A stretch of DNA of 64,000 bases from Thalia democratica (Eukaryota). This document shows, piece after piece, positions 25,897-57,613 of the stretch. The notes under the pieces were generated by a model. The model saw only the letters and a program-made list of their open reading frames with translations, had not been told where the DNA came from and searched no databases. The translations under genes and the position numbers were made by a program. Positions within the stretch are counted from its first letter, which is position 1. Every line of letters begins with the position of its first letter. The DNA lies in the NCBI GenBank assembly GCA_965202585.1, contig OZ241829.1:18290001-18354000 (forward strand). The letters are read 5' to 3'.

Positions 25897-25902
25897 AATA
25901 AA
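25897..25902 (+). terminator. Polyadenylation signal after the S exon; equivalent at 26934-26939 after S2 and in later copies
   Basis: AATAAA about 105 nt after the stop, in a U-rich context. Confidence 0.55.
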
Positions 25903-32638: not shown

Positions 32639-33092
32639 TCCGGTGTCACCCGGTTAAATTTGTATAATCTACAGCCTATAGATATACACAAGCATGTTTC
32701 AAAACTATGTTAAAACTATTGGATTTTATTTAGTTTGCCTCTCCTACCAACCCCGGAAGATTTCAATGTGAAAATGGTAGAACTAGACTTTACTGACTAC
32801 ACCATGACTAGATACGCTTGCGATAATTCAAATTACCAGTTTTTGTACTTTATTCATCTAAACATCACTAAGTGATGAGTATATTTCAAGTTAAAAATCA
32901 TTAATTAAATTAAGGTTTTTAGTTTCACCAACATAAAAAGCATAACTACGAAAAAAACCACATAAATAAAACGACCAAATAAAAGCTTAAGTTGTATAAA
33001 TTAAAATCTTCTTTACTAAAGTTTACCTTGACCAAAATGCTTAATATGTTGGTTTCTTATTGAATTATTTTTGACTCACTAACAACTCACAG

Positions 33093-33216
33093 GGGAATAC
33101 GAGTTCAGCTTAACGAAAAAAAAGGGTACGTTTAACCAGGCTCGGGAGCAATGTCAAAGATTGAATGGAGACCTAATATATTAAAACTTGGGACCCGGCA
33201 GGAAAATGTATCACCC
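33093..33216 (+). pseudogene. R exon copy 1, nonsense
   Basis: GAA->TAA at 33182-33184. Confidence 0.85.
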
Positions 33217-33606
33217 GTAAGTTGTATTTTAAATATATGTATATGTATGTCTATAAAACAAAACAGCATTTCGTTTGACAACTTGATAATGACTTGAATT
33301 TGTGTGAAAATACTTTTTTACCGTAAAAAATATTTCTTTTTTTCCAACTTAAAAAATCTCGATTAATTCTGTGTGTTTCACTATTTAACTAACCTATCCT
33401 AAGAATATAACAGACAACTTAAGTTTTGGTTTAGTTAGCAAACTAACAACAACAAAAATTTGAGTACCATCGGACGTACACAACTTTGCATATAAAATTA
33501 AATCCAACTAACATGCTTGATTTTTTCTTCATCTCTTTTACCGCATAAAGTCACAACGGATTCATTTGAACTTTATTACCGCGTAAATCTGAAAATAAAA
33601 AAACAG

Positions 33607-33943
33607 AGAAATCAGGGATTTGGTTCTGGATAATCCAGCGTGGATCGGGCTGACCGACCAAGTTGTTGAGGGTGAGTGGCGAAAACCGGGATCTTCAGCT
33701 TCAGATGAGAAGTTTGACACTAGAATGAATGGAAACTTGTTCTCGTGGGTATGGCCTGAGCCCAATAACGGCCGTGTTAAAGGGATCACCGCAGTTTACC
33801 AGGACTGTGTGTATGTCGGTTATAAAGGCCCACTGAATATGGACGACACCAACTGCTGCACCGGTGTTCCGGCTGGAACATGCTCATCTTTTTACTCAGG
33901 CGACAAGTTCGGTCTTTGCGAGATAAAACTGCCCGAAGATTAA
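33607..33943 (+). CDS. Class S CTLD exon, copy 2 (open)
   Basis: Intact acceptor, open frame and stop; 11 aa differences from copy 1. Use is not proven. Confidence 0.55.
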
Positions 33944-34692
33944 AGAGAAATTTGAGCTGTGCGAAGCAGAGCACAGCGCTTGAAGGTGTTGAAGTTTTGT
34001 ATTTGTTTTATGAGCTTCCGTTTTTAAATTATTTTGTTTTTGCTCCTTTTAATAAAACTTTGTACTTTTTTTTCATTTAGATTTTATGGCTCTGTATTTT
34101 TTTCTTAGTTTTTAAAGTTTAGTTTAAACCTAGTTAGGTATATATCATTAAAATGCTGTAGTAAAACATATTTTCATATTTAAATTACCTAATAAGTCAT
34201 CGTAACACTGTAGAATGTTTTAGTATAGACTAGAATATTTTATAAGGTTATTTATTGCATTTGTTTAAAATCTAAAATTAAAAGCTATATGCATGTTTGT
34301 CTGCTGTACAGTGAAAAGCTGTAAGTTTTATTTTAAATATATTTGTCTTTAAAACATAACAGCATTATGTTATAAAATTTGATTATGACATGAGTTAGTG
34401 TAAAAATACTTGTTAACAGTAAAAATATTTCTTTTATTACCAGCTTAAAAATCTCGATCAATTATGTGTTTTTCACTAGTTAACTAACACATCCTAAGAA
34501 TATAATAAACAACTTAAGCTTTGGTTTAGTTAGCAAACTAACAACAACAAAAAAATTGAGTAACACAACTTTGCATATAAAAATAAATCCAACTGACATG
34601 CTTGATTTTTTCTTCATCTCTTTTACCAAAAAAAATCACAGCGGATTCATTTCAACTGTATTACAGCGTAAATCTCAAAGTAAAATAAACAG

Positions 34693-34975
34693 AGAAATCA
34701 GAAAATTGTTCCTGGATAAGGAAGCGTGGATCGGCCTGACCGACGAATTAGTTGAGGGCGTGTGGCGAAAACCGGAATCAGATGAGATGTTTGACACTGA
34801 AATGGGTGGAAACTTGTTCTCGTGGGCCTCAGGTGAGCCAAACGACGGCGGTGAACACACCATCCAAAACTGCGTGTATGTCCGTTTGAAGTTTGGACGG
34901 CTGGGTATGGACGACAATCATTGCTCGATTCCTTTAAAGTTGGGTCTCTGCGAGATAAAACTGCCCGAAGAGTAA
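34693..34975 (+). CDS. Class S2 CTLD exon, copy 2 (open)
   Basis: Intact acceptor, open frame and stop. Confidence 0.55.
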
Positions 34976-37900
34976 AAAATTGAGCTGTGCGTAGCAGGGC
35001 ACAGCGCTTGTTGGTGCTGCTGTTTTGTATTTATTTTATGAGTTTGTGTTTTTAGATTATTTTGGTTTTGTTCGTTTTAATAAAACTTTGTACTTTTTTT
35101 TCATTTAGATTTTATAGCTCTGTATTTTTTTAGTTTTTAAAGTTTTGTTTAAATCTTGTTAGATATATATCATTAAAATGCTAGTGTAAAACATTTTTTC
35201 TTCTTTGAATTACCTAATAAGTCATCGTAGTACTGTGTAATATTTTAGTATAGACTAGAATATTTTATAAGGTTGTTTATTGCATTTGTTTTAAATCTCA
35301 AATTAAGAGCTATATGCATGTTTTTCTGCTGTACAGTGAAAACAAGATTTTATTTCACTTTCTCGTTTGAGATATTTTAGTTGTTTTATCCCGTAAGATA
35401 CACTTGTGCACAAAACAGCTTTACTGTGCTTAAATTATTTATTTCTTATTCAAAACTAGTTAATACAAAACATTTCAAATTTACTCAATGTTGCACTCTT
35501 TTATTGTATTTATACTCCTAAAGCAAACTTAAATACAAGGCGTTGGACATATTTTTAATTGAAACTACCTAAATATATAAAGTTTATTTAGAGAATAATA
35601 ATATAGTACTTTTTTTTTTAAGTGGTAGAAGCTATTTGGCTTTAAAAATATTTCAGTAGTACTTGGTTGTTTTTTAAAACAATTTCTATTTTTATTAAAA
35701 CAGTAAACGGTCTGCGGTAGACTACGTTTACTTCAAGCCTACAGTATATAATACCAACCTTTTGTTTAATACTTGTAATAAATTTTATTGTTTTGATATA
35801 TCTCTTTAAGCTTAAATTGTGCTTCATAAGAATAGAAGTAGTTGTACACTTCAAGGTTACCTAAACAAAGTATGTTTGGCACCGCATAATGATAGCAACT
35901 ACTTATTTTTATTTCACTCAAGTAAAGTTGGGTAAAACTATTTTATATTTATTTGTAAACTAGTCACTTATTTTTTTTTAGTTGTAAAAATAAGTATTCA
36001 AACCATTTTTTTTAAATGTACTAAATTAACGATTTAAACGACATAAACTAAATTTGCACAATCTTGTTGGCGAGTAATAATAAATTTATTGTTAATCTCA
36101 ATAAGCCATCTGATATTTTCTGGTGGTCTTTTTAAACATCACAAGTTTGTTGCAGGGGTAGAAAGCTTTTTTATTTAACCGGCTTTCATTATTTAAAACA
36201 TATATTAAAAAGGCTATACTGAAACTATGACTAAATTTAATGATAAAGTAAATTATATCAAAATAACATAATCATATACAAATGAAAATTAGTTTTAGTT
36301 GCAAACTATTGTGTTTAAAAGTAAATTTACATGTAAAAACAGTATGCTGCTTTGAGACAAGCAATACTAGTATGAGACAAGTAAATTTTTAAAAATTACC
36401 TTTTAAAAATAACCAGTAGTTATTACGGCCATCATCAACAGAGTTGAGATGTTTCGCGCCATCAGTAATAATTAATGAGCTTTACCGCAAGATCAACAGC
36501 ATCCGAGACAATCCTACGACCGGTTTCGTCCTAATTAGGGCTAATCAGGCAGGAATACTCGCGAGACACCGCTATTGTGAACTTAACCAAGCGGGCTTAA
36601 GTACAAAGTACTGATCATCAAACATAGCTAAAGTTATAAAAACTCAATAAAAAGTTTAAACTTATTTACTTAATATAAAAGGTGAAAACGTAGTACAAAT
36701 TACTAATATTAAAATAATATTCTATTAGGGGGAGACGTAGGGAAATAAAACTAATTAGTATCATAAATAGAAATATGATGAAATCAGTAGTTAGTTTAGA
36801 TGAGATAATTAGTATAAAGGAATTGTTTACTTATTTTCTTCTTACTATCTTTGTGGAAAGTTACTGAATTTTATACTATTTGAATTGAATCTGCTCAGTT
36901 TTAAGCGAATATCTTCTACCCTCTCACACAATACGACATTTAATTTTTTTTCTTGGTAAGATTGATTAAAACAAAAGAGTGATTTAATTACCATAACATA
37001 CTATCTTGAAACTATTTTTTTTGTCATTGAAAAACAAAACCTTTTTCAATTAAATTCATCGATTATTTATTTTTCAGACTAATGAAAAAATATATGCTTA
37101 GTTGATCTCTTTTATTGAGTCAATACTCATTGCAAATGCCGATAAATACAAACAATAATTGCAATAAAATTGCAATATGTAAGTAGACAAAAAAAAACAG
37201 TTAGTAAACTACACCACAGTCATAAAATTCGACGTTTTATTCAAAGCTTTTGAAATAAAAGTTTCACCTACACCTGAGGTTTAGAAAATGTTTAACCTAG
37301 TCTGAGTTTTTAAAATTTTAAAACTAGCCTGTTTGTTTGGCATCTGTGTTTAAAATAAAATTCACAAAATAAAGAAATGTCGAAGTTTGTTAAGAGTGAA
37401 TTTGTTATATAGTTAAAAAAATATTTATAAGTCAGCTTCATTAAAAAAACAACTTTTATAAATATTTTTAATAAATGTATAAAATTTATTAAGCCATTTA
37501 TGAAGTAGAAAAACTTATTTTCTATTGAGCATTGTAGCAATTTTTTATCTGCAATAAAAATACATATTGCATTTAAAAACAGTAAATGTGATACACAAGA
37601 CGAGCTATAGGAATAAAAAACTTTAGTTGGGATTTATTGCGAGAAACGAAAAAAAAATTGCTTAAATCAGTTTTAACATAGTTATCATTAGTAACTACAG
37701 ACTCATCAGAAAAAACTGTTAAGGAAAGTTATAAAGTAGCAAAAGTAATTAAAAAAAAACATACCGTTTAGAACTGAAAACTTATTTTAAAAAGTTGTGA
37801 TGAACGTTGTAAAACATTTTTACTATCTAGTATTAACTAGAATAGTTGTTTACTAACTAGAATTTAACCTAGTTAAGCTTAATTAAGCATTTATTTATAG

Positions 37901-40900
37901 GATAGATTATATTAAACCTTTTGTAGAAGCTGTTAATCGTAACGCACACTCACTAACACGATTAGTAGCACTAATCATTCTATTTGAGGATAAGTGCTAG
38001 CAGCAAGAGATCCATACCTGTGTCAGTATACGACCGCTCGAGGTTAGTTACTGATGCTGAAGAGGGTATGGACGCTAGTTACCACATACCAACTATAAAC
38101 CCTGAGCGGACTAACATATCTCACCAACACAAAGCGATATCAGAACAACACAAATCGATATCAGACGAAATGAAAGTGTTAGTAGCAAGAGCTGAGGGTT
38201 ATAATGGCATCCTTCAACGCTACGATCCACTACCTTTCGATAACATTAACGAATACACAACGAAAACGAAGACCATTAATAAACAAAAAATGCGCCAAAA
38301 CTATGTCGCACCGAACAGTTTTGAACATTTAACGGCGTACAGTCATCAAACGTCGTTAAAAAATGTTAATGAAATAATTAGAACATTAGAACGATAAAAA
38401 AAACTCTTCTTCCAATTTACGTCAACGACGGCAGTGTTTTTAATAAAGAAACTAGCGCAGATAAGCTTACACGTAAATTTCACCGTTTCACTAAAATTAC
38501 TAGACCACGCCAAACCCTGAATTACTTCGTCGGAGAATTTGAGCGACTCAATGTGACAGATGATCACACGAAATATAACATTATAGTCGGGAAATGGGTT
38601 CCCGACGAGGTGTCACAATACTATACGATAGTCAGCCCTGAAAAACAAAATTTTCAATCGTTCAAAGAATTTTTTGAAAGACTTGACTGTCCCTTTACGC
38701 CAATTCTTGGCAAACGTCCAATACATACGAGCTCTACTTCGTTTAGCGCGTATTTGGCCGAGGCTACCGAATGTGCAACAGCTCATGAGGATGACCGTAT
38801 TAAGTTCTTTTTATAATATCATGCTCCTAGTTCTTTGAAGAGCAGGATCGAAAAATATGTTGTAGAAGATCTTATACAATTTAAACGCCGCGTACAGACT
38901 ATGCGGTCACACCAAAGTGACGACCCTCCTGTATCCGATCCACCAGTCAATTATAACAAGTCAAGAAAAAACCAAGGCCATCAACGACATAATGGGCGTC
39001 ACAATAGCGGCAATGACAGGTATGTTAAACAAAGTTATGACAACAGCGGTAACTTGAGACAGAACTTTTAAAAGCGTTACCAAAATTACGGTAGTAGTAA
39101 TAATTACGGGCGTAACTTTAACAATCGAAATCAAAATTGCATTAATTTTTCTAGATACTTCGTTCGAAATTTTAATATCCGAAACCAAAATTGTTGTAAC
39201 GGTGGTAGTTATAGGCACGAACTTGATAATCGTTACCAAAACCATGGTAACAGTAATAACTATTAGCGCCACCGAAAAAAAAATGACGTTAGTAGACCTT
39301 ATAATAAAAAGTTATTAATAAAATTAAAGCTCTTACTAATTCACTTAACTTGAGGTTTAAATTAAACTTTATATCTAAATTGATAAACTTTATGATGTAT
39401 TTTATCGAAAAAAATGTGCTTAATGCAATTTGAATGAATATCATTTTTAATTTAATTTATATTTTGTGATGCTTTATTGTTGTCTTTTTCTTAAGTGTTA
39501 AGGAGGTGTTGCAGATTGACATAAATCATAAAAGTAGTATAAATAAGGAAGCTAATTTTTCAGAAAAAATTAGTTTTGAATCAAACATATAATAAAATAT
39601 GTTTGATCGTTGAGCTTCTCGTAATTCGTTTAAGTTGAGGTTTAAATTGAACTTTTTATTTATCATGATTAGTTTATTTTTATCAAAAAAATGTACTTAA
39701 TACGATTTAGATGAATCCCCTTTGTAATTTGATTTAAATTTCAAGTATATTTTGTGATACTTGATTATGGAGCATCTCGTAATTCGTTTAAGTTGAGGTT
39801 TAAATTAAACTTTTATAATGATTATTTATTTTCTGAATTTTTTATTCTTATTTTTTTTTTCTATCATTAATTGTTCTTAAAATAAAGTTTAAAATTTAAA
39901 TTCTATAGATTGAATAGAACGACTTTTTGAGAAGTATGATACTATTTGTTTGCTTTCATAAAACTTACTCATTAAAAAAAAATAAATAAAGTCGATATTG
40001 GACATCGACCTGAAAAATTTATTGTTTTCGCTTCGATAGTCAAAATGTCGAGTTAGTTAATAAATAAATTAAATTTTAAGTTTTTTTCGTTTAATGATAA
40101 TTAAATTAAAAACAATTTGGTTTTTTAAAACATTGTTTCGAACAAATAATAACAATCGCTAGTTAAGCTAGTTGACGCATTTTCGTTAATGCCATGTAGA
40201 GTAAACTAACAATCACGCCGGGTATCATGCTTCTACCAGCATGTTATAACTAGATAATTAGAACCATGCCTTGATCATGCGGAACTGTTATGCAAACGAG
40301 GTGTACATAAGCAGCCGAGCGAATGAGAGAGCAAGTTTTACCGACTTCATGTCAAGAAGAAAGCAGTTCCACGTCTCTTGGCGCTTTGAGCGTAAGCCGC
40401 CATCTTAGAAAAGCTAGATGATCTCCGGAAAATCCTTCTTATTCAAGTATTTGTTTGTTTATCTAAAACATTTACTTTGTACTTTACTTCATAACTTCGT
40501 AGTTTTTATATCTTATTCTATATACATTTTGTATACCTACTTTAGCAATGTCGACGGGGCGTACAGCTCGTTTTGAGTTGTTAGCATGCCATACTCATAA
40601 GTTTACGCATACTGTAGCAGACAAGCTGTCCTCCAGCAACAACTTTCAGTTTTGGTCAATTTGAACATAGAACTCAACGTATAAGCCTACACATTCGGTG
40701 GCATAAACTTATTACTTCTGTCTTTCTTTTCTTTATTTCAATATTTGTGTCTTTTTATTTTGCGCGCTCTACATCCGGTGTCACCCGGTTAAATTTGTAT
40801 AATCTACAGCCTATAGATATACACAAGCATGTTTCAAAACTATGTTAAAACTATTGGATTTTATTTAGTTTGCCTCTCCTACCAACCCCGGAAGATTTCA

Positions 40901-41227
40901 ATGTGAAAATGGTAGAACTAGACTTTACTGACTACACCATGACTAGATACGCTTGCGATAATTCAAATTACCAGTTTTTGTACTTTATTCATCTAAACAT
41001 CACTAAGTGATGAGTATATTTCAAGTTAAAAATCATTAATTAAATTAAGGTTTTTAGTTTCACCAACATAAAAAGCATAACTACGAAAAAAACCACATAA
41101 ATAAAACGACCAAATAAAAGCTTAAGTTGTATAAATTAAAATCTTCTTTACTAAAGTTTACCTTGACCAAAATGCTTAATATGTTGGTTTCTTATTGAAT
41201 TATTTTTGACTCACTAACAACTCACAG

Positions 41228-41351
41228 GGGAATACGAGTTCAGCTTAACGAAAAAAAAGGGTACGTTTAACCAGGCTCGGGAGCAATGTCAAAGATTGAA
41301 TGGAGACCTAATATATTAAAACTTGGGACCCGGCAGGAAAATGTATCACCC
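41228..41351 (+). pseudogene. R exon copy 2, same nonsense
   Basis: TAA at 41317-41319. Confidence 0.85.
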
Positions 41352-41741
41352 GTAAGTTGTATTTTAAATATATGTATATGTATGTCTATAAAACAAAACA
41401 GCATTTCGTTTGACAACTTGATAATGACTTGAATTTGTGTGAAAATACTTTTTTACCGTAAAAAATATTTCTTTCTTTCCAACTTAAAAAATCTCGATTA
41501 ATTCTGTGTGTTTCACTATTTAACTAACCTATCCTAAGAATATAACAGACAACTTAAGTTTTGGTTTAGTTAGCAAACTAACAACAACAAAAATTTGAGT
41601 ACCATCGGACGTACACAACTTTGCATATAAAATTAAATCCAACTAACATGCTTGATTTTTTCTTCATCTCTTTTACCGCATAAAGTCACAACGGATTCAT
41701 TTGAACTTTATTACCGCGTAAATCTGAAAATAAAAAAACAG

Positions 41742-42078
41742 AGAAATCAGGGATTTGGTCCTGGATAATCCAGCGTGGATCGGGCTGACCGACCAAGTTG
41801 TTGAGGGTGAGTGGCGAAAACCGGGATCTTCAGCTTCAGATGAGAAGTTTGACACTAGAATGAATGGAAACTTGTTCTCGTGGGTATGGCCTGAGCCCAA
41901 TAACGGCCGTGTTAATGGGATCACCGCAGTTTACCAGGACTGTGTGTATGTCGGTTATAAAGGCCCACTGAATATGGACGACACCAACTGCTGCACCGGT
42001 GTTCCGGCTGGAACATGCTCATCTTTTTACTCAGGCGACAAGTTTGGTCTTTGCGAGATAAAACTGCCCGAAGATTAA
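41742..42078 (+). CDS. Class S CTLD exon, copy 3 (open)
   Basis: Differs from copy 2 by K->N (RVKG vs RVNG). Confidence 0.55.
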
Positions 42079-42827
42079 AGAGAAATTTGAGCTGTGCGAA
42101 GCAGAGCACAGCGCTTGAAGGTGTTGAAGTTTTGTATTTGTTTTATGAGCTTCCGTTTTTAAATTATTTTGTTTTTGCTCCTTTTAATAAAACTTTGTAC
42201 TTTTTTTTCATTTAGATTTTATGGCTCTGTATTTTTTTCTTAGTTTTTAAAGTTTAGTTTAAACCTAGTTAGGTATATATCATTAAAATGCTGTAGTAAA
42301 ACATATTTTCATATTTAAATTACCTAATAAGTCATCGTAACACTGTAGAATGTTTTAGTATAGACTAGAATATTTTATAAGGTTATTTATTGCATTTGTT
42401 TAAAATCTAAAATTAAAAGCTATATGCATGTTTGTCTGCTGTACAGTGAAAAGCTGTAAGTTTTATTTTAAATATATTTGTCTTTAAAACATAACAGCAT
42501 TATGTTATAAAATTTGATTATGACATGAGTTAGTGTAAAAATACTTGTTAACAGTAAAAATATTTCTTTTATTACCAGCTTAAAAATCTCGATCAATTAT
42601 GTGTTTTTCACTAGTTAACTAACACATCCTAAGAATATAATAAACAACTTAAGCTTTGGTTTAGTTAGCAAACTAACAACAACAAAAAAATTGAGTAACA
42701 CAACTTTGCATATAAAAATAAATCCAACTGACATGCTTGATTTTTTCTTCATCTCTTTTACCAAAAAAAATCACAGCGGATTCATTTCAACTGTATTACA
42801 GCGTAAATCTCAAAGTAAAATAAACAG

Positions 42828-43110
42828 AGAAATCAGAAAATTGTTCCTGGATAAGGAAGCGTGGATCGGCCTGACCGACGAATTAGTTGAGGGCGTGTGG
42901 CGAAAACCGGAATCAGATGAGATGTTTGACACTGAAATGGGTGGAAACTTGTTCTCGTGGGCCTCAGGTGAGCCAAACGACGGCGGTGAACACACCATCC
43001 AAAACTGTGTGTATGTCCGTTTGAAGTTTGGACGGCTGGGTATGGACGACAATCATTGCTCGATTCCTTTAAAGTTGGGTCTCTGCGAGATAAAACTGCC
43101 CGAAGAGTAA
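42828..43110 (+). CDS. Class S2 CTLD exon, copy 3 (open)
   Basis: Same protein as copy 2 in the ORF track. Confidence 0.55.
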
Positions 43111-46100
43111 AAAATTGAGCTGTGCGTAGCAGGGCACAGCGCTTGTTGGTGCTGCTGTTTTGTATTTATTTTATGAGTTTGTGTTTTTAGATTATTTTGG
43201 TTTTGTTCGTTTTAATAAAACTTTGTACTTTTTTTTCATTTAGATTTTATAGCTCTGTATTTTTTTAGTTTTTAAAGTTTTGTTTAAATCTTGTTAGATA
43301 TATATCATTAAAATGCTAGTGTAAAACATTTTTTCTTCTTTGAATTACCTAATAAGTCATCGTAGTACTGTGTAATATTTTAGTATAGACTAGAATATTT
43401 TATAAGGTTGTTTATTGCATTTGTTTTAAATCTCAAATTAAGAGCTATATGCATGTTTTTCTGCTGTACAGTGAAAACAAGATTTTATTTCACTTTCTCG
43501 TTTGAGATATTTTAGTTGTTTTATCCCGTAAGATACACTTGTGCACAAAACAGCTTTACTGTGCTTAAATTATTTATTTCTTATTCAAAACTAGTTAATA
43601 CAAAACATTTCAAATTTACTCAATGTTGCACTCTTTTATTGTATTTATACTCCTAAAGCAAACTTAAATACAAGGCGTTGGACATATTTTTAATTGAAAC
43701 TACCTAAATATATAAAGTTTATTTAGAGAATAATAATATAGTACTTTTTTTTTTAAGTGGTAGAAGCTATTTGGCTTTAAAAATATTTCAGTAGTACTTG
43801 GTTGTTTTTTAAAACAATTTCTATTTTTATTAAAACAGTAAACGGTCTGCGGTAGACTACGTTTACTTCAAGCCTACAGTATATAATACCAACCTTTTGT
43901 TTAATACTTGTAATAAATTTTATTGTTTTGATATATCTCTTTAAGCTTAAATTGTGCTTCATAAGAATAGAAGTAGTTGTACACTTCAAGGTTACCTAAA
44001 CAAAGTATGTTTGGCACCGCATAATGATAGCAACTACTTATTTTTATTTCACTCAAGTAAAGTTGGGTAAAACTATTTTATATTTATTTGTAAACTAGTC
44101 ACTTATTTTTTTTTAGTTGTAAAAATAAGTATTCAAACAATTTTTTTTAAATGTACTAAATTAACGATTTAAACGACATAAACTAAATTTGCACAATCTT
44201 GTTGGCGAGTAATAATAAATTTATTGTTAATCTCAATAAGCCATCTGATATTTTCTGGTGGTCTTTTTAAACATCACAAGTTTGTTGCAGGGGTAGAAAG
44301 CTTTTTTATTTAACCGGCTTTCATTATTTGAAACATATATTAAAAAGGCTATACTGAAACTATGACTAAATTTAATGATAAAGTAAATTATATCAAAATA
44401 ACATAATCATATACAAATGAAAATTAGTTTTAGTTGCAAACTATTGTGTTTAAAAGTAAATTTACATGTAAAAACAGTATGCTGCTTTGTGACAAGCAAT
44501 ACTAGCATGAGACAAGTAAATTTTTAAAAATTACCTTTTAAAAATAACCAGTAGTTATTACGGCCATCATCAACAGAGTTGAGATGTTTCGCGCCATCAG
44601 TAATAATTAATGAGCTTTACCGCAAGATCAACAGCATCCGAGACAATCCTACGACCGGTTTCGTCCTAATTAGGGCTAATCAGGCAGGAATAGTCGCGAG
44701 AAACCGCTATTGTGATCTTAACCAAGCGGGCTTAAGTACAAAGTACTGATCATCAAACATAGCTAAAGTTATAAAAACTCAATAAAAAGTTTAAACTTAT
44801 TTACCTAATATAAAAGGTGAAAACGTAGTACAAATTACTAATATTAAAATAATATTCTATTAGGGGGAGACGTAGGGAAATAAAACTAATTAGTATCAAA
44901 AATAGAAATATGATGAAATCAGTAGTTAGTTTAGATCAGATAATAAATGTAAAGGAATTATTTACTTATTCTCTTCTTACTATCTTTGTGGAAAGTTACT
45001 GAATTTTATACTATTTGAATTAAATCTGCTCAGTTTTAAGCGAATATCTTCTACCCTCTCACACAATACGACATTTAATTTTTTTTCTTGGTAAGATTGA
45101 TTAAAACAAAAGAGTGATTTAATTACCATAACATACTATCTTGAAACTTTTTTTTTTGTCATTGAAAAACAAAAACTTTTTCAATTAAATTCATCGATTA
45201 TTTATTTTTCAGACTAATGAAAAAATATATGCTTAGTTGATCTCTTTTATTGAGTCAATACTCATTAAAAATGCCGATAAATACAAACAATAATTGCAAT
45301 AAAATTGCAATGTGTAAGTAGACTAAAAAACAAGTAGTAAACTACACCACAGTCATAAAATTCGACGTTTTATTCAAAGCTTTTGAAATAAAAGTTTCAC
45401 CTACACCTGAGGTTTAGAAAATGTTTAACCTAGTCTGAGTTTTTAAAATTTCAAAACTAGCCTGTTTGTTTGGCATCTGTGTTTAAAATAAAATTCACAA
45501 AATAAAGAAATGTCGAAGTTTGTTAAGAGTGAATTTGTTATATAGCTAAAAAAATATTTATAAGTCAGCTTTAATGAAATACTAAGTTTTATAAATATTT
45601 TTAATAAATGTATAAAATTTATTAAGCCATTTATGAAGTAGAAAAACTTATTTTCTATTGAGCATTGTAGCAATTTTTTATCTGCAATAAAAATACATAT
45701 TGCATTTAAAAACAGTAAATGTGATACACAAGACGAGCTATAGGAATAAAAAACTTTAGTTGGGATTTATTGCGAGAAACGAAAAAAAAATTGCTTAAAT
45801 CAGTTTTAACATAGTTATCATTAGTAACTACAGACTCATCAGAAAAAACTGTTAAGGAAAGTTATAAAGTAGCAAAAGTAATTAAAAAAAAACATACCGT
45901 TTAGAACTGAAAACTTATTTTAAAAATTTGTGATGGACGTTGTAAAACATTTTTACTATCTAGTATTAACTAGAATAGTTGTTTACTAACTAGAATTTAA
46001 CCTAGTTAAGCTTAATTAAGCATTTATTTATAGGATAGATTATATTAAACCTTTTGTAGAAGCTGTTAATCGTAACGCACACTCACTAACACGATTAGTA

Positions 46101-49100
46101 GCACTAATCATTCTATTTGAGGATGAGTGCTAGCAGCAAGAGATCCATACCTGTGTCAGTATACGACCGCTCGAGGTTAGTTACTGATGCTGAAGAGGGT
46201 ATGGACGCTAGTTACCACATACCAACTATAAACCCTGAGCGGACTAACATATCTCACCAACACAAAGCGATATCAGAACAACACAAATCGATATCAGACG
46301 AAATGAAAGTGTTAGTAGCAAGAGCTGAGGGTTATAATGGCATCCTTCAACGCTACGATCCACTACCTTTCGATAACATTAACGAATACACAACGAAAAC
46401 GAAGACCATTAATAAACAAAAAATGCGCCAAAACTATGTCGCACCGAACAGTTTTGAACATTTAACGGCGTACAGTCATCAAACGTCGTTAAAAAATGTT
46501 AATGAAATAATTAGAACATTAGAACGATAAAAAAAACTCTTCTTCCAATTTACGTCAACGACGGCAGTGTTTTTAATAAAGAAACTAGCGCAGATAAGCT
46601 TACACGTAAATTTCACCGTTTCACTAAAATTACTAGACCACGCCAAACCCTGAATTACTTCGTCGGAGAATTTGAGCGACTCAATGTGACAGATGATCAC
46701 ACGAAATATAACATTATAGTCGGGAAATGGGTTCCCGACGAGGTGTCACAATACTATACGATAGTCAGTCCTAAAAACCGAAATTTTCAATCGTTCAAAG
46801 AATTTTTTGAAAGACTTGACTGTCCCTTTACGCCAATTCTCGGCAAACGTCCAACACATACGAGCTCTACTTCGTTTAGCGCGTATTTGGCCGAGGCTAC
46901 CGAATGTGCAACAGCTCATGAGGATGACCGTATTAAGTTCTTTTTATAATATCATGCTCCTAGTTCTTTGAAGAGCAGGATCGAAAAATATGTTGTAGAA
47001 GATCTTATACAATTGAAACGCCGCGTACAGACTATGCGGTCACACCAAAGTGACGACCCTCCTGTATCCGATCCACCAGTCAATTATAACAAGTCAAGAA
47101 AAAACCAAGGCCATCAACGACATAATGGGCGTCACAATAGCGGCAATGACAGGTATGTTAAACAAAGTTATGACAATAGCGGTAACTTGAGACAGAACTT
47201 TTAAAAGCGTTACCAAAATTACGGTAGTAGTAATAATTACGGGCGTAACTTTAACAATCGAAATCAAAATTGCATTAATTTTTCTAGATACTTCGTTCGA
47301 AATTTTAATATCCGAAACCAAAATTGTTGTAACGGTGGTAGTTATAGGCACGAACTTGATAATCGTTACCAAAACCATGGTAACAGTAATAACTATTAGC
47401 GTCACCGAAAAAAAATTACGTTAATAGACCTTATAATAAAAAGTTCAGAATAAAATTAAAGCTCTTACTAATTCACTTAACTTGAGGTTTAAATTAAACT
47501 TTATATCTAAATTGATGGACTTTATGATGTATTTTATCGAAAATGTGCTTAATGCAATTTGAATGAATATCGTTTTTAATTTAATTTATATTTTGTGATG
47601 CTTTATTGTTGTCTTTTTCTTAAGTATTAAGGAGGTGTTGCAGATTGACATAAATCATAAAAGTAGTATAAATAAGGAAGCTAATTTTTCAGAAAAAATT
47701 AGTTTTGAATCAAACATATAATAAAATATGTTTTATCGTTGAGCTTCTCGTAATTCGTTTAAGTTGAGGTTAAAATTGAACTTTTTATTTATCATGATTA
47801 GTTTATTTTTATCAAAAAAATGTACTTAATACAATTTAGATGAATCCCCTTTGTAATTTGATTTAAATTTCAAGTATATTTTGTGAAACTTGATTATGGA
47901 GCATCTTGTAATTCCTATAAGTTGAGGTTTAAATTAAATTTTATATTTATAATGATTAGTTTATTTTCTAAATTTTGTTATTCTTTTTTATTATTTTTCT
48001 ATCATTAGTTGTTCTTAAAATAAAGTTTTAAATTTAAACTCTACAGATTGAACAAAACGACTTTTTGAGAAGTATGATACTATTTGTTTGCTTTCATAAA
48101 GCTTACTCATTAGAAAAAAAAAGTCGATATTTGACATCGACCTGAAAAATTTATTGTTTTCGCTTCGATAGTCAAAATGTCGAGTTCGTTAATAAATAAT
48201 TTAATTTTTAAATTGTTTTCGTCTAATAATAGTTCAAATAAAAACAATTTGTTTTTTTAAAACATTGTTTCGAACAAATAATAAAAATCGCTAGTTAAGT
48301 TAGTTGACGCATTTTCCTTAATGCCATGTAGAGTAAACTACCAATCACGCCGGGTATCATTTATATCTATCAGCATATTATAATTAGATAATTAGAACCA
48401 TGCCTTGATCATCCTTGATCATCCGAAACTTTTATGCAAACGAGGTGTTCATAAGCAGCCGAGCGAATGAGAGAGCAAGTTTTACCGACTTCATGTCAAG
48501 AAGAAAGCAGTTCCACGTCTCTTGGCGCTTTGAGCGTAAGCCGCCATCTTAAAAAAGCTAGATGATCTCCGGAAAATCCTTCTTATTCAAGTATTTGTTT
48601 GTTTATCTAAAACATTTACTTTGTACTTTACTTCATATCTTCGTAGTTTTTATATTTTATTCTATATACATTTTGTATACCTACTTTAGCAATGTCGAGG
48701 GGGCGTACAGCTCGATTTGAGTTGTTAGCGTGCCATATTCATAAGTTTACACATACTGTAGCAGACAAGCTGTCCTCCAGCAACAACTTCCAGTTTTGGT
48801 CAATTTAAACATAGAACTCAACGAAAGAAGCCTACACATTTGGTGGCATAAAATTATTACTTCTATCTTTCTTTTCTTTATTTCAATATTTTTATCTTTT
48901 TATTTTGCGCGCTCTACATCCGGTGTCATCCGGTTAAATTTGTATAATCTACAGCCTATAGATAAACACAAGCATGTTTCAACACTGTGTTAAAACTATT
49001 GGATTTTGAACAACAGTTTTATTTAGTTTGTCCTCTCCTACCAACCTCGGACGATTTCAATGTGAAAATCGTAGAACTAGACTTTACTGCCTACACCATG

Positions 49101-49387
49101 ACTAGATACGCATGCGATGATTCAAATTACCAGTTTTTGTACTTTATTCATCTAAACATCACTAATTGATGAGTATATTTCAAGTTGAAGATCATTAATT
49201 AAATTAAGGTTTTTAGTTTCACCAACATAAAAAGCATAATTACGAAATAAACCACATAAACATAACGACCAAATAAAAGCTTAATTTGTATAAATTAAAA
49301 CCTTTGTTACTAAAATTGTACCTTGACCAAAATGCTTAATATGTTGGTTTCTTATTGAATTATTTTTGACTCACTAACAACTCACAG

Positions 49388-49510
49388 GGGAATACGAGTT
49401 CAGCTTAACGAAAAAAAGGGTATGTTTAACCAGGCTCGGGAGCAATGTCAAGAAATGAGTGGAGACCTAATATATGAAAACTTAGGACCCGACGGGAAAA
49501 TGTATCACCC
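49388..49510 (+). pseudogene. R exon copy 3, 1-nt frameshift
   Basis: 123 nt versus 124; the A-run is one base short, giving a TGA. Confidence 0.8.
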
Positions 49511-49896
49511 GTAAGTTGTATTTTAAATATATGTATATGAATGTCTATAAAACAAAACAGCATTTCGTTTGACAACTTGATAATGACTTGAATTTGTGTG
49601 AAAGTACTTTTTACGATAAAAAATATTTCTTTTTTACCAACTTAAAAAACCTCGATTAATTCTGTGTGTTTCACTATTTAACTAACCTATCCTAAGAATA
49701 TAACAGACAACTTAAGTTTTGGTTTAGTTAGCAAAATAACAACAATTTTTTGAGTTACATCGGACATACACAACTTTGCATATAAAATTAAATCCAACTG
49801 ACATGCTTAATTTTTTCTTCATCTCGTTTACCGCAAAAAATCACAACGGATTCATTTGAACTTTATTACCGCGTAAATCTGAAAATAAAAAAACAG

Positions 49897-50179
49897 AAAA
49901 ATCAGAAAATTGGTCCTGGATAAGGAAGCGTGGATCGGCCTGACCGACGAATTAGTTGAGGGCGTGTGGCGGAAACCGGAATCAGATGAGATGTTTGACA
50001 CTGAAATGGCTGGAAACTTGTTCTCGTGGTCATCAGGTGAGCCAAACGACGGCGGTGAACACACCATCCAAAACTGCGTGTATGTCCGTTTGAAGTTTGG
50101 ACGGCTGGGTATGGACGACAATCATTGCTCGATTCCTATAAAGTTGGGTCTCTGCGAGATAAAACCGCCCGAAGAGTAA
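49897..50179 (+). CDS. Class S2 CTLD exon, copy 4, behind a class-S intron (chimeric)
   Basis: The upstream intron matches the one before 25453; the exon body matches class S2; open frame. Confidence 0.55.
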
Positions 50180-53100
50180 AAAATTGAGCTGTGCGTAGCA
50201 GAGCACAGCGCTTGTTGGTGCTGCTGTTTTGTATTTATTTTATGAGTTCCTGTTTTTAGATTATTTTGTTTTTGTTCGTTTTAATAAAACTTTGTACTTT
50301 TTTTTCATTTAGATTTTATAGCTCTGTATTTTTTTAGTTTTTAAAGTTTTGTTTAAATCTTGTTAGATATATATCATTGTAATGCTACTGTAAAACATTT
50401 TTTCTTCTTTAAATTACCTAATATGTCATCGTAGTACTGTGTAATACTTTAGTTTAGTCTAAATGTTTTGTAAGGTTTTTTTGTTGCATTTGTTTGAAAT
50501 CTCAAATTAAGAGCTATATGCATGTTTGTCTGCTGTACAGTAAAAACAAGATTTTATTTCACTTTCTCGTTTGAGATATTTTAGTTGTTTTATCCCGTAA
50601 GATACACTTGTACACAAAACAGCTTTACTGTGCTTAAATTATTTATTTCTTATTTAAAATTAGCTAATACTAAACATTTAAAAGTTCCTCAATGATGCAC
50701 TTCTTTATTGTATTTATACTCCTAAAGCAAACTTAAATACAAGGCTTTGGACATATTTTTAATTGAAACAACCTAAATATATAAAGTTTATTTAGAGAAT
50801 AATAATAAAGTACTTTTTTTTATATTTTAAGTGGTAGAAGCTATTTGGCTTTAAAAATATTTCAGTAGTACTTGATTTTTTTTTTGAAACAATTTCTATT
50901 TTTATTAAAACAGTAAACGGTCTGCGGTAGACTACGTTTACTTCAAGCCTACAGTATATAATACCAACCTTTTGTTTAATACTTGTAATAAATTTTATTG
51001 TTTTGATATATCTCTTTAAGCTTAAATTGTGCTTCATAAGAATAGAAGTAGTTGTACATTTCAAGGTTACCTAAACAAAGTATGTTTGGCACCGCATAAT
51101 GATAGCAACTATTTATTTTTATTTCAAACAAGTAAAATAGGGTAAAACTATTTTATATTCATTTGTAAACTAGTCACTTAATTTTTTTTTAGTTGTAAAA
51201 ATAAGTATTCAAACCACTTTTTTTAAATGTACTAAATTAACGATTTAAACGACATAAACTAAATTTGCACAATCTTGTTGGCGAGTAATAATAAATTTAT
51301 TGTTAATCTCAATAAGCCATCTGATATTTTCTGGTGGTCTTTTTAAACAGCACAAGTTTGTTGCAGGGGTAGAAAGCTTTTTTATTTAACCGGCTTTAAT
51401 TATTTAAAACATATATTAAAAAGGCTATAGTGAAACTATGACTAAATTTAATGATAAAGTAAATTATATCAAAATAACATAATCATATACAAATGAAAAT
51501 TAGTTTTAGTTGCAAACTATTGTGTTTAAGAGTAAATTTACATGTAAAAACAATATGCTGCTTTGAGACAAGCAATACTAGTATGAGACAAGTAAATTTT
51601 TAAAAATTACCTTTTAAAAATAACCATTAGTTATTACGGCCATCATCAACAGAGTTGAGATGTTTCGCGCCATCAATAATAATTAATGAGCTTTACCGCA
51701 AGATCAACAGCATCCGAGACAATCCTACGACCGGTTTCGTCCTAATTAGGGCTAATCAGGCAGGAATAGTCGCGAGAAACCGCTATTGTGATGTTAACCA
51801 AGCGGGCTTAAGTACAAAGTACTGATCATCAAACATAGCTAAAGTTATAAAAACTCAATAAAAAGTTTAAACTTATTTGCTTAATATAAAAGGTGAAAAC
51901 GTAGTACAAATTACTAATATTAAAATAATATTCTATTAGGGGGAGACGTAGGGATATAAAACTAATTAGTATCAAAAATAGAAATATGATGAAATCAGTA
52001 GTTAGTTTAGATGAGATAATTAATATAAAGGAATTATTTACTTATTTTCTTTTTACTATCTTTGTGGAAAGTTACTGAGTTTTAATCTATTTGAATTAAA
52101 TCTGCTCAGTTTTAAGCGAATATCTTCTACCCTCTCACACAATACGACATTTAATTTATTTTCTTGGTAAGATTGATTAAAACAAAAGAGTGATTTAATT
52201 ACCATAACATACTATCTTGAAACTATTTTTTTTGTCATTGAAAAACAAAAACTTTTTCAATTAAATTCATCGATTATTTATTTTTCAGACTAATGAAAAA
52301 ATATATGCTTAGTTGATCTCTTTTATTGAGTCAATACTCATTGCAAATGCCGATAAATACAAACAATAATTGCAATAAAATTGCAATATGTAAGTAGACA
52401 AAAAAAAACAGTTAGTAAACTACACCACAGTCATAAAATTCGACGTTTTATTCAAAGCTTTTGAAATAAAAGTTTCACCTACACCTGAGGTTTAGAAAAT
52501 GTTTAACCTAGTCTGAGTTTTTAAAATTTTAAAACTAGCCTGTTTGTTTGGCATCTGTGTTTAAAATAAAATTCACAAAATAAAGAAATGTCGAAGTTTG
52601 TTAAGAGTGAATTTGTTATATAGCTAAAAAAATATTTATAAGTCAGCTTCATTAAAAAAACAACTTTTATAAATATTTTTAATAAATGTATAAAATTTAT
52701 TAAGCCATTTATGAAGTAGAAAAACTTATTTTCTATTGAGCATTGTAGCAATTTTTTATCTGCAATAAAAATACATATTGCATTTAAAAACAGTAAATGT
52801 GATACACAAGACGAGCTATAGGAGTAAAAAACTTTAGTTGGGATCTATTGCGAGAAAAGAAAAAAAAAATTGCTTAAATCATTTTTAACATAGTTATCAT
52901 TTGTAACTACAGACTGACTAGAAAAAACTGTTAAGGAAAGTTATAAAGTAGCAAAAGTAATTAAAAAAAATATACCGTTTAGAACTGAAAACTTATTTTA
53001 AAAATTTGTGATGGACGTTGTAAAACATTTTTACTATCTAGTATTAACTAGAATAGTTGTTTACTAACTAGAATCTAACCTAGTTAAGCTTAATTAAGCA

Positions 53101-56100
53101 TTTATTTATAGGCTAGATTATATTAGACCTTTTGTAGAAGCTGTTAATCGTAACGCACACTCACTAACACGATTAGTAGCACTAATCATTCTATTTGAGG
53201 ATGAGTGCTAGCAGCAAGAGATCCATACCTGTGTCAGTATACGACCGCTCGAGGTTAGTTACTGATGCTGAAGAGGGTATGGACGCTAGTTACCACAACT
53301 ATAAACCCTGAGCGGACTAAAAAAAAATATACCGTTTAGAACTGAAAACTTATTTTAAAAATTTGTGATGGACGTTGTAAAACGTTGTAAAACGTTTTTA
53401 CTATCTAGTATTAACTAGAATAGTTGTTTACTAACTAGAATCTAACCTAGTTAAGCTTAATTAAGCATTTATTTATACGCTAGATTATATTAGACCTTTT
53501 GTAGAAGCTGTTAATCGTAACGCACACTCACTAACACGATTAGTAGCACTAATCATTCTATTTGAGGATGAGTGCTAGCAGCAAGAGATCCATACCTGTG
53601 TCAGTATACGACCGCTCGAGGTTAGTTACTGATGCTGAAGAGGGTATGGACGCTAGTTACCACAACTATAAACCCTGAGCGGACTAACATATCTCACCAA
53701 CACAAAGCGATATCAGAACAACACAAATCGATATCAGACGAAAGGAAAGTGTTAGTAGCAAGAGCTGAGGGTTATAACGGCATCCTTCAACGCTACGATC
53801 CACTACCTTTCGATAACATTAACGGATACAAAACGAGAACGAAGACCGTTAATAAACAAAAAATGCGCCAAAACTATGTCGCACCGAACAGTTTTGAACA
53901 TTTATCGGCGTACAGTCATCAAACGTCGTTAAAAAATGTTAATGAAATAATTAGAACATTAGAACAAAAAAAAAACTCTTCTTCCAATTTACGTCAACGA
54001 CGGCAGTGTTTTTAATAAAGAAACTAGCGCAGATAAGCTTACACGTAAATTTCACCGTTTCACTAAAATTACTACACCACGCCAAACCCTGAATTACTTC
54101 GTCGGAGAATTTGAGCGACTCAATGTGACAGATGATCACACGAAATATAACATTATAGTCGGAAAATGGGTTCCCGACGAGGTGTCACAATACTATACGA
54201 CAGTCAGCCCTGAAAAACAAAATTTTCAATCGTTCAAAGAATTTTTTGAAAGACGTGACTGTCCCTTTACGCCAATTCTCGGCAAACGTCCAATACTTAC
54301 CAGCTCTACTTCGTTTAGCGCGTATTTGGCCGAGGCTACCGAATGTGCAACAGCTCATGAGGATGACCGTGTTAAGTTCTTTTTATAATATCATGCTCCT
54401 AGTTCTTTGAAGAGCAGGATCGAAAAATATGTTGTAGAAGATCTTATACAATTTAAACGCCGCGTACAGACTATGCGGTCACACCAAATTGACGACCCTC
54501 CTGTATCCGATCCACCAGTCAATTATAACAAGTCAAGAAAAAACCAAGGCCATCAACGACATAATGGGCGTCACAATAGCGGCAATGACAGGTATGTTAA
54601 ACAAAGTTATGACAATAGCGGTAACTTGAGACAGAACTTTTAAAAGCGTTACCAAAATTACGGTAGTAGTAATAATTACGGGCGTAACTTTAACAATCGA
54701 AATCAAAATTGCATTAATTTTTCTAGATACTTCGTTCGAAATTTTAATATCCGAAACCAAAATTGTTGTAACGGTGGTAGTTATAGGCACGAACTTGATA
54801 ATCGTTACCAAAACCATGGTAACAGTAATAACTATTAGCGTCACCGAAAAAAAATTACGTTAGTAGACCTTATAATAAAAAGTTCAGAATAAAATTAAAG
54901 CTCTTACTAATTCACTTAACTTGAGGTTTAAATTAAACTTTATATCTAAATTGATGGACTTTATGATGTATTTTATCGAAAATGTGCTTAATGCAATTTG
55001 AATGAATATCGTTTTTAATTTAATTTATATTTTGTGATGCTTTATTGTTGTCTTTTTCTTAAGTGTTAAGGAGGTGTTGCAGATTGACATAAATCATAAA
55101 AGTAGTATAAATAAGGAAGCTAATTTTTCAAAAAAAATTAGTTTTGAATCAAACATATAATAAAATATGTTTGATCGTTGAGCTTCTCGTAATTCGTTTA
55201 AGTTGAGGTTTAAATTGAACTTTTTATTTATCATTATTAGTTTATTTTTATCAAAAAAATGTACTTAATACGATTTAGATGAATCCCCTTTGTAATTTGA
55301 TTTAAATTTCAAGTATATTTTGTGATACTTGATTATGGAGCATCTCGTAATTCGTTTAAGTTGAGGTTTAAATTAAACTTTTATAATGATTATTTATTTT
55401 CTGAGTTTTTTACTCTTCTTTTTTATTCTTCTATCATTAATTGTTCTTAAAATAAAGTTTAAAATTTAAATTCTATAGATTGAATAGAACGACTTTTTGA
55501 GAAGTATGATACTATTTGTTTGCTTTCATAAAACTTACTCATTAGAAAAAAAAAATAAATAAAGTCGATATTGGACATCGACCTGAAAAATTTATTGTTT
55601 TCGCTTCGATAGTCAAAATGTCGAGTTAGTTAATAAATAAATTAAATTTTAAGTTTTTTTCGTTTAATGATAATTAAATTAAAAACAATTTGGTTTTTTA
55701 AAACATTGTTTCGAACAAATAATAACAATCGCTAGTTAAGTTAGTTGACGTATTTTCCTTAATGCCATGTAGAGTAAACTAACAATCACGCCGGGTATCA
55801 TGCTTCTACCAGCATGTTATAATTAGATAATTAGAACCATGCCTTGATCATGTGGAACTGTTATGCAAACGAGGTGTACAAAAGCAGCCGAGCGAATGAG
55901 AGAGCAAGTTTTACCGACTTCATGTCAAGAAAAAAGCAGTTCCACGTCTCTTGGCGCTTTGAGCGTAAGCCGCCATCTTAGAAAAGCTAGATGATCTCCG
56001 GAAAATCCTTCTTATTCAAGTATTTGTTTTTTTTTCTAAAACATTTACTTTGTACTTTACTTCATAACTTCGTAGTTTTTATTTCTTATTCTATATACAC

Positions 56101-56817
56101 TTTGTATACCTACTTTAGCAATGTCGACGGGGCGAACAGCTCGATTTGAGTTGTTAGCGTGCCATACTCAGAAGTTTACACATACTGTAGCAGACAAGCT
56201 GTCCTCCAGCAACAACTTCCAGTTTTGGTCAATTTGAACATAGAACTCAACGTATAAACCTACACATTCGGTGGCATAAACTTACTACTTCTATCTTTCT
56301 TTTTTTTTTATTTCAATATTTGTATCTTTTTATTTTTCGCGCTCTACATCCGGTGTCATCCGGTTAAATTTGTATAATCTACAGCCTATAGATAAACACA
56401 AGCATGTTTCAACACTGTGTTAAAACTATTGGATTTTGAACTACAGTTTTATTTAGTTTGTCCTCTCCTACCAACCTCGGACGATTTCAATGTGAAAATC
56501 GTAGAACTAGACTTTACTGACTACACCATGACTAGATACGCTTGCGATGATTCAAATTACCAGTTTTTGTACTTTATTCATCTAAACATCACTAATTGAT
56601 GAGTATATTTCAAGTTAAAAATCATTAATTAAATTATGGTTTTTAGTTTCACCAACATAAAAAGCATAACTACGAAATAAACCACATAAATATAACGACC
56701 AAATAAAAGCTTAAGTTGTATAAATAAAAACCTTCATTACTAAAATTGTACCTTGACCAAAATGCTTAATATGTTGGTTTCTTATTGAATTATTTTTGAC
56801 TCACTAACAACTCATAG

Positions 56818-56919
56818 GGGAATACGAGTTCAGCTTAACGAAACTCGGGAGCAATGTCAAAGATTGAATGGAGACCTAATATATGAAAACTTAGGACCCG
56901 ACGGGAAAATATATCACCC
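56818..56919 (+). pseudogene. R exon copy 4, 22-nt deletion
   Basis: 102 nt versus 124; acgaaa is joined directly to ctcggg, causing a frameshift to TGA. Confidence 0.85.
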
Positions 56920-57311
56920 GTAAATTGTATTTTATATATATATGTCTATTCAAAAAAAGCATTTCGTTTAACAACTTGATCATGACTTGAATTAGTGTGA
57001 AAATACTTGTTAACGGTAAAAAATATTTCTTTTTTTTACCAGCTTAAAAAATCTCGATCAATTATGTGTTTTTCACTGTTTAACTAACACATCCTAAGAA
57101 TATAATAAACAACTTAAGCTTTGGTTTAGTTAGCAAACTAACAACAACAACAAAAAAAAATTTGAGTAACATCGGACGTACACAACTTTGCATATAAAAT
57201 TAAATTCAACTAACATGCTTGATTTTTTCTTCATCTCTTTTACTAAAAAAAATCACAGCGGATTCATTTTAATTGTATTACAGCGTAAATCTCAAAGTTA
57301 AAAATAAACAG

Positions 57312-57613
57312 AGAAATCAGGGATTTGGTCCTGGATAATTCAGCGTGGATCGGCCTGACCGATGAACTAGTTGAGGGCGTGTGGCGGAAACCGGGATCTT
57401 CAGCTACAGATGAGGTGTTCGACACTAGAATGAATGGAAACTTGTTTTCGTGGGCCGCAGATGAGCCAAATAACGGTGTAAATAACAACACGCACTGTGC
57501 ATATGTCAGTTTTATGGCCCTACTGATTATGGACGACCAACGATGCTCGTTAGAAATTAAATGTGGCCAAAAGTGTGGTCTTTGCGAGATAAAACTGCGA
57601 GATAAAATTTCAG
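57312..57613 (+). CDS. Divergent CTLD second-half exon, class T
   Basis: acag|A GAA; WIGLTD..DEPNN..HCAYV..MDDQRC..GLCEI. Possible phase-1 donor G|gtttta at 57614; otherwise the frame stops at 57636. No S-type 3' UTR follows. Confidence 0.55.

Follow-up and report, generated by a model that had tools for sequence, protein, structure and literature searches.

The 64,000-nt stretch of Thalia democratica DNA analyzed here (contig OZ241829.1, positions 18,290,001 to 18,354,000, forward strand; hereafter the window) carries a tandem array of lectin exons in which every duplicated copy of one exon, R, is broken and every copy of its downstream partner, the S-type exon, is open. The explanation that we favor, and to which we give about an even chance, is a young array driven by recombination: the protein would be made from the first R exon (R0) and the first S-type exon (S_0), and the other copies, 0% to 6% apart, would be young by-products of unequal crossing-over. 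The asymmetry would then largely be neutral decay of few and young copies. One A-run in R was hit twice, and the S-type exons are nearly without homopolymer runs. Note that the spare S-type exons retain acceptors, frames and stops, and that their joining to R0 would be possible.

Layout of the array

The window has a base composition of ∼29% G+C, contains no N, and carries on its plus strand many sushi (CCP) exons together with C-type lectin exons, all of one long gene. The locus is best explained as the 3' terminus of a long gene for sushi (CCP) and C-type lectin domains in an AT-rich animal genome. The array and its units are as follows.

24225-24407, + strand: last sushi (CCP) exon upstream of the array (Pfam Sushi E 2.9e-7; splice sites read)
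24490-57540, + strand: tandem array, 8.1-kb unit in 4.2 copies
24490-32655, + strand: unit U0
32656-40790, + strand: unit U1
40791-48935, + strand: unit U2
48936-56365, + strand: unit U3, 7.4 kb, S and S2 fused by crossover
56366-57540, + strand: partial unit U4

The sushi exon at 24225-24407 is in phase 1 at both ends and is present in one copy only, outside the repeat. Homology between units extends from the intron behind this exon to a point inside the last S-type exon, T_4, at ∼57537. A full unit contains, in order, a half-sushi relic, an R exon (124 nt), a 387-nt intron, an S exon, a 1.1-kb sub-duplicate with an S2 exon, and ∼5.5 kb of retroelement debris; exon totals at the locus are five R and eight S-type. 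Unit copies are 93% to 100% identical, and the identity is mosaic (U1 is almost equal to U2, and U0 to U3 across the first 1 kb). Divergence of U4 from U0 is 13% to 18%.

R exons

The five R exons are listed with the lesions found in the assembled window sequence.

24942-25065, + strand: R0, 124 nt, intact, with AG acceptor and GTAAGT donor; weak Lectin_C match
33093-33216, + strand: R1, 124 nt, GAA>TAA at 33182-33184
41228-41351, + strand: R2, 124 nt, identical TAA at 41317-41319
49388-49510, + strand: R3, 123 nt, seven instead of eight A in the A-run, plus one substitution
56818-56919, + strand: R4, 102 nt, 22-nt deletion beginning in the same A-run as the R3 lesion

R0 matches the Pfam Lectin_C profile (PF00059) over profile positions 2-22 with 13.6 bits, below the cut-off of 22.6. 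R encodes, as predicted from its sequence, the N-terminal half of a C-type lectin domain, with the first conserved Cys. That all four duplicated copies carry lesions had been reported in the initial annotation of this DNA, made from the sequence alone, and was borne out by the assembled sequence, in which R0 is open. Alignment of the five copies, together with the exact coordinates, resolved the lesions into three independent events, two of which lie in one A-run. These correspond to the three lesion types of the annotation; the TAA, the 1-nt deletion and the 22-nt deletion are all present as described, and that of R3 is uncorroborated in another sample (see below). The TAA of R1 and that of R2 were inherited together.

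The R copies fall into two forms, QEMSG (R0 and R3) and QRLNG (R1, R2, R4 and both downstream R exons of a sister locus on contig C2, described below). R0 is intact at both loci. R exons start in phase 1, like the sushi exons, and end in phase 2, so a second R spliced behind R0 would shift the frame.

S-type exons

Three forms of S-type exon (S, S2 and T) are found in the window.

25453-25789, + strand: S_0, stop TGA; WIGLTD, EPN, MDD and three Cys; AATAAA at 25897
26548-26830, + strand: S2_0, 93 codons, open, stop TAA; Pfam Lectin_C 23.5 bits; AATAAA at 26934
33607-33943, + strand: S_1, open, stop TAA, without GT behind the last codon
34693-34975, + strand: S2_1, open
41742-42078, + strand: S_2, open
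42828-43110, + strand: S2_2, open
49897-50179, + strand: S2_3, open hybrid of S-type upstream intron and S2 body, from a 1.1-kb S/S2 crossover
57312-57636, + strand: T_4, third S-type form, open, stop TAG

The annotation had also stated that no S, S2 or T exon carries a stop or frameshift, and all eight are indeed open at this locus; its T was taken to be 57312-57636, which lies just beyond the range that it covered (33093-56919). If its T was instead the half-sushi relic of each unit, U1 and U2 do carry lesions there, a 13-nt and a 1-nt deletion at the start of the relic. Each of the eight has an ACAG/A acceptor, a phase-2 start and an open frame to its stop, with coding starts at 25454, 26549, 33608, 34694, 41743, 42829, 49898 and 57313, and in each the first base completes a Pro codon. 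A-runs of the kind seen in R are absent from S2 and T, and the S-type exons as a group have almost no homopolymer runs.

Judged by profile comparison, the S-type exons are the C-terminal half of a C-type lectin domain, including EPN. A profile of 11 S-type exons matches the C-terminal half of the carbohydrate-recognition domains of Mincle and langerin (E 2.3e-4 to 8e-3), with EPN aligned in the Mincle match (E 2.3e-4). Against Lectin_C, S2_0 (23.5 bits) passes the cut-off, and S_0 (15.4) and T_4 (16.8) fall below it; scores under the cut-off for S_0, T_4 and R0 are as expected because these are half domains. Since R matches the start of the profile and the S-type exons the C-terminal half, R and S together would make one lectin domain. 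Of the four conserved Cys, R contributes one and every S-type exon three. The W-I-G-L motif shows almost no variation (at least 90% of sequences), the E-P of EPN is invariant and its N nearly so. MDD occupies the position of WND, so that calcium-dependent binding of sugar is plausible without being certain.

S and S2 end one codon past ...CEIK-x-P-E-x. The stop falls at one codon position in all S and S2 copies, seven here and four in the C2 locus, and at the same position in the independent loci L006 and L007 (C5, 23.8 Mb) and in the Tara/ENA metagenome contigs L010-L013. Either TAA or TGA serves as the stop, and the preceding codon is GAT, GGT or GAG. T_4 has lost the usual end: behind CEIK, a 13-nt local duplication gives a new tail of 13 residues and TAG. 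Because the position of the stop codon is kept and GT is absent there from most S and S2 copies, the S-type exons were read as terminal and not internal. We rejected a reading as internal exons joined to the sushi exon at 57823, since a phase-1 GT occurs in S_0 and T_4 only; S_1, S_2 and the family loci have AT at that place, and the GT of S2 is in phase 2. AATAAA occurs downstream of the S-type exons at +104 to +108. It was not accepted as proof of polyadenylation, as ∼0.5 chance hexamers are estimated per 260 nt with a base composition like that of the window and the whole flank is conserved. Extra AG dinucleotides upstream of the S2 and T acceptors were considered as a splice defect and dismissed, as L006 and L007 share one of them.

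Comparison with neutral expectation

The initial annotation had proposed that purifying selection may act on the S-type exons and not on the extra R exons, and had suggested as checks the ratio of nonsynonymous to synonymous divergence (dN/dS) and a count of disablements against the divergence of flanking sequence. Neutral rates were derived from the non-coding columns of units U0-U3, which gave at least 325 substitutions in 6586 sites and 39 short insertions or deletions (indels), of which 36 are interpretable. Homopolymer runs account for 12 of these 36, and 90% of all 39 have a length that three does not divide. At these rates, 1.3 stops and 1.9 frameshifts (∼3.2 events) are expected in the S and S2 exons of U0-U3 and none is seen (P = 0.04 for none), and 0.35 stops and 0.46 frameshifts (∼0.8 events) are expected in the R exons of the same units and two are seen (P = 0.20 for two or more). 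R decay fits neutrality and the S-type exons are only marginally too intact. Tests of which exon was hit are post hoc. With one lesion per lineage, the chance that all fall in R is 0.014; with the events of the C2 locus included (three of four in R) the values are 0.017-0.05, and without R3 (two of three in R) they are 0.08-0.16.

Between S_0 and S_1 there are 13 nonsynonymous changes, which replace 11 amino acids, and 6 synonymous ones; the figures of 11 and 6 agree with those reported earlier. Three of the 11 replacements lie near EPN, which is no more than the share of the exon that this region occupies, and a concentration there was rejected. For this pair alone dN/dS is 0.60 (P = 0.23). 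The pooled changes of the young S-type exons (20 synonymous, 43 nonsynonymous) give a dN/dS of 0.59 (P = 0.038), a value that takes in the lineage of S_0, which is called certainly used. R shows 1 synonymous and 10 nonsynonymous changes plus a stop, and R versus S-type gives P = 0.16 by Fisher's test. Note that dN/dS of 0.4-1.7 is also found between clearly separate genes of the family, so a value near 0.6 says little.

Every one of these tests leans toward purifying selection on the S-type exons and not on the extra R exons. None is decisive, and the C2 locus breaks the pattern. The tests are marginal because the units are only 0% to 6% apart. One control from elsewhere in the genome favors the proposal: all nine modules with a full S exon have an intact R, and R is often broken in modules whose S exon is deleted. 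Because of the former, the spare R exons here look unconstrained. The suggestion that only R0 is used is coherent, since R runs from phase 1 to phase 2 and the S-type exons from phase 2 to a stop.

The R3 lesion and contigs of other samples

Three sequencing runs match the locus (X1, X2 and X3), all DNA-type and at the level of contigs, with X1 and X2 coming from one other sample; the run search found no RNA run. These runs share 54% to 66% of 31-mers with the window, which converts to a divergence of 1.3% to 2% between samples, and their contigs cover all bins of the examined stretch. The R3 lesion is a homopolymer length call. The sole X1/X2 contig across the run has one extra A, giving a 124-nt exon, and X3 is uninformative at this position. 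Letters specific to U3 at 49540 and 49650 are absent from X1 and X2, so the contig that spans R3 may derive from another unit. Near-identical units collapse in such contigs.

The contigs of X1 and X2 also join 49741 to 50057, omitting 315 nt within the U3 intron and the S2_3 exon. This skip is probably a structural difference of U3 in the other sample.

Sister locus on contig C2

A region of contig C2 (61.33-61.38 Mb) is collinear with the window at 95% to 97.5% identity. The flank ∼45 kb further on matches C5 at 94%, and homology extends over at least 130 kb at 92% to 97.5% overall. The gene on C2 has 2.4 array units, as against 4.2 here. Its first and last R exons are intact, the last being the one that precedes T', and the middle one has the 22-nt deletion of R4. 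TGG>TAG interrupts one of its S2 exons, and its other four S-type exons are open; the downstream module of R plus T is wholly intact. With an intact downstream R and a TAG in S2, "spare R dead, S-type open" is no rule of the gene pair. We rejected C2 as the other haplotype, because it is 3% to 8% diverged over at least 130 kb and samples differ by 1.3% to 2%. This comparison argues, short of proof, for a paralogous segment and not a haplotig.

The paralogous segment (C2:61276001-61386920, loci L001-L005 and L014) corresponds to window positions 1-64000 and beyond. The C2 and C5 copies differ by several kb-scale indels, among them a 1.8-kb GC-rich insert behind the first S exon of C2.

Origin of the array

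The sub-duplication that created S2 is delimited as follows.

25066-27198, + strand: 1.1-kb sub-duplication, 25066-26161 versus 26165-27198, 79% identical

Its left end, 25066, coincides with the opening base of the intron behind R0; S2 therefore arose without a separate R. The junction has a short motif in common with the downstream flank. The array may have begun with two older modules ∼8 kb apart, arranged as R(a)-S...R(b)-T, a start that fits the two R forms (QEMSG and QRLNG) and the divergent U4. Unequal crossing-over between these two R-plus-S modules would have produced the 8.1-kb tandem array, a separate 1.1-kb duplication by microhomology would have added S2, and exchange between units would keep the copies alike.

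Pattern in other loci of the family

Divergence between loci (K) was compared across U0, L006, L007 and L011. K is 0.085-0.11 for introns, R and the first 46 codons of S, 0.07 for the downstream flank, and 0.28, with many in-frame indels, for the last two-thirds of S (EPN to end; window 25591-25786). This last segment, which has homologues in L006, L007, L011 and L013, is 3 to 4 times more diverged than the introns, and its synonymous divergence (dS) is also raised, to 0.5-0.9. Exon types (S-like, T-like and S2-like) do not track their flanks: L006 and L007 have flanks 5.5% apart, dS of 0 in the 5' part of the exon and dS of 0.54 in the 3' part. Because dS and dN are both raised in them, the variable segments appear older than the homogenised flanks, a combination that points to cassette-like exchange. 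The T-like group has dN/dS of 1.2-1.7 on small counts. The young copies within the array show no excess divergence of S exons over flanks.

S2-like modules with their own R occur elsewhere (C5:6.08-6.52 Mb, 69.7 Mb, C239 and C248; 92% to 94% identical), including the R plus S2-type modules L016 (C5:6104001-6108000) and L017 (C5:69723501-69727500). All those inspected have a 320-nt deletion that takes out the acceptor together with 160 nt at the 5' end of the exon, and about half of the R exons of these amplified modules share a 1-nt deletion near the 3' end. Full-length S2 exons are found only in this gene pair.

For the spliced R-S protein, a word-index search gave 6 matches and an exhaustive search of representatives gave 14, with no spliced form among them. 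The six word-index matches and the closest representative matches are exon-sized open reading frames, three of which were traced to genomic contigs of marine metagenomes (ENA, Tara). A scan of JGI metagenomes gave no match.

Alternative explanations

A possible but somewhat unlikely alternative is that the S-type exons serve as alternative last exons. Transcription would read through past the first poly(A) signal and R0 would be spliced to any of the eight S-type exons, whose heads differ around the EPN sugar-binding site, with selection keeping the S-type exons and not the redundant R. The splice signals and frames agree with this: R0 is intact in both loci, every S-type exon keeps ACAG/A, phase 2 and stop, and a second R breaks the frame. 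The spare exons, however, reach as far as 32 kb past the first AATAAA. Further points weigh against an array of by-products and, in the case of S2 and of the tests, for alternative last exons. S2, born without an R, is still open in five of its six copies across both loci and in metagenome contig P0001, and differs from S by in-frame indels only. T is open in both loci, with flanks 12% to 15% from those of the S and S2 modules. The directional tests lean to constraint on the S-type exons (0.04 for intactness, 0.014-0.05 for the exon hit, and dN/dS of 0.59 with P = 0.038). The tests of asymmetry and of dN/dS are nominally significant, but P values of 0.01-0.05 are post hoc and become 0.08-0.16 if R3 is an assembly slip, and C2 combines an S2 exon interrupted by TAG with a downstream R that is intact. 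Likewise, divergence of the 3' two-thirds of S at 3 to 4 times that of introns is as expected where a ligand-binding part diversifies, but among the young copies the divergence of S exons does not exceed that of the flanks. A broader version, which we regard as unlikely, would have one gene yield a repertoire of lectin heads, R0 being carried on the sushi stalk and joined to one of up to eight terminal exons, with R copies decaying and exchange reshuffling heads between individuals.

It is improbable, in our judgment, that the array matters as a reservoir of DNA and not through splicing, in which case spare S-type exons or whole R-plus-S modules would, in the course of evolution, donate the variable 3' segment of the expressed terminal exon by gene conversion or unequal exchange. 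In a variant of the idea, a two-exon module would be used, splicing running from the sushi exon via a downstream R into the S of that module. The mosaic identity of units, exon types that do not track flanks (L006 versus L007), dS and dN raised together in the variable segment, U3 as an S/S2 recombinant and the wholly intact R-plus-T module of C2 are all consistent with this reading. This exchange is deduced from patterns alone, none of them a demonstrated conversion tract into S_0, and selection on a reservoir would be only weak and indirect, so that open frames are not predicted.

That part of the pattern is an artefact of assembly, from over-expansion or wrong phasing of the array or from errors in homopolymers, is very improbable: the extra A at R3 in X1/X2, the missing U3-specific letters at 49540 and 49650 and the presence in the assembly of at least one duplicated small contig (C1574, equal to part of C4) speak for it, but two assembled copies share the TAA and two loci the 22-nt deletion, every bin of the examined stretch is covered by contigs of the three runs, and the 3% to 8% between C2 and C5 exceeds the 1.3% to 2% between samples.

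Other features of the window

Two further features on the plus strand lie in or next to the array.

29834-30670, + strand: gag-like retroelement open reading frame, 279 amino acids, open in U0 only
57823-58017, + strand: sushi exon copy past the array, a copy of 16589-16783, with TAC>TAA at 58011-58013

Copies of the gag-like frame at 37975, 46108 and 53626 are frameshifted in U1-U3, and the family has at least 146 dispersed matches in the genome, some within open reading frames of 600-1700 amino acids. The sequence 3' of the array at 57823-58017 copies a sushi exon with its intron flanks from 41 kb upstream at 87% to 93% identity. Its TAC>TAA lies directly behind the last Cys; the C2 counterpart retains TAC and a donor.

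Between the last sushi exon and R lies a half-sushi relic (24581-24723), which reads C-P-x-L-P ... Y-A-C and then runs into stops. There is one per unit, starting at 24581, 32734, 40869, 49027 and 56457, and the relics of U1 and U2 have lost their start through 13-nt and 1-nt deletions. It is ∼90% conserved, stops included, in L006, L007, L011 and L013.

A hammerhead-like repeat of very high copy number (51706-51777, - strand) is likewise present singly in each unit; that of U0 lies near 28350. It scores 28 bits against Rfam HH9, under the gathering score of 52 (E 6e-5), and its contig depth is ∼140,000 in all three runs, compared with ∼200-600 for single long contigs.

A second internal duplication, 568-3432 versus about 11100-14785, has its members ∼10.6 kb apart and repeats at least two sushi exons of the gene (open reading frames 1643/12226 and 2339/12866). 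The C2 copy seems to carry just one of the two members.

Relation to known systems and significance

Alternative last exons can arise by tandem duplication of the 3' end of a gene. The present array resembles such cases in having homologous terminal exons, each with its own acceptor and stop, behind a constant exon, and differs in that the unit also carries copies of the constant exon, which are broken, and in being known from DNA alone. The Dscam exon 4, 6 and 9 clusters consist of mutually exclusive exons that arose by tandem duplication and are old and diverged. Shared with them are tandem homologous exons of which one is usable at a time, the variable part being a binding surface; here, two exons used together would break the frame or meet a stop. 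In contrast to Dscam, the exons are terminal and not internal, each unit spans 8 kb and has a retroelement within it, and the copies are very young (0% to 6%). The array is also like sets of unprocessed pseudo-exons from young segmental tandem duplications, with copies 93% to 100% identical, mosaic exchange, and four of four spare R exons plus one S2 exon of C2 disabled, but the eight of eight intact S-type exons are slightly above neutral prediction (P ∼0.04).

The FREPs of Biomphalaria are a hypervariable family of invertebrate lectins. The Rlecs of prawns are another (PMC7536079). The likeness to these lies in a multigene lectin family whose ligand-binding part varies far more than the rest. 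Here, however, the variable part is the 3' two-thirds of a single half-domain exon, with synonymous divergence also raised, and the introns and downstream sequence that flank it are 85% to 92% alike between loci.

The two paralogous loci are unequal in copy number, and the contigs of the other sample are without the U3-specific letters. Should the spare exons go unused, the locus would still be a clean case of unequal crossing-over littering the 3' end of a gene with intact-looking exons, and a caution against equating "open" with "selected" at a divergence of a few percent. If they are used, it would represent a compact means of diversifying a tunicate sugar-recognition protein, with a constant exon and variable terminal exons, and would be a lectin counterpart of exon choice of the Dscam type.

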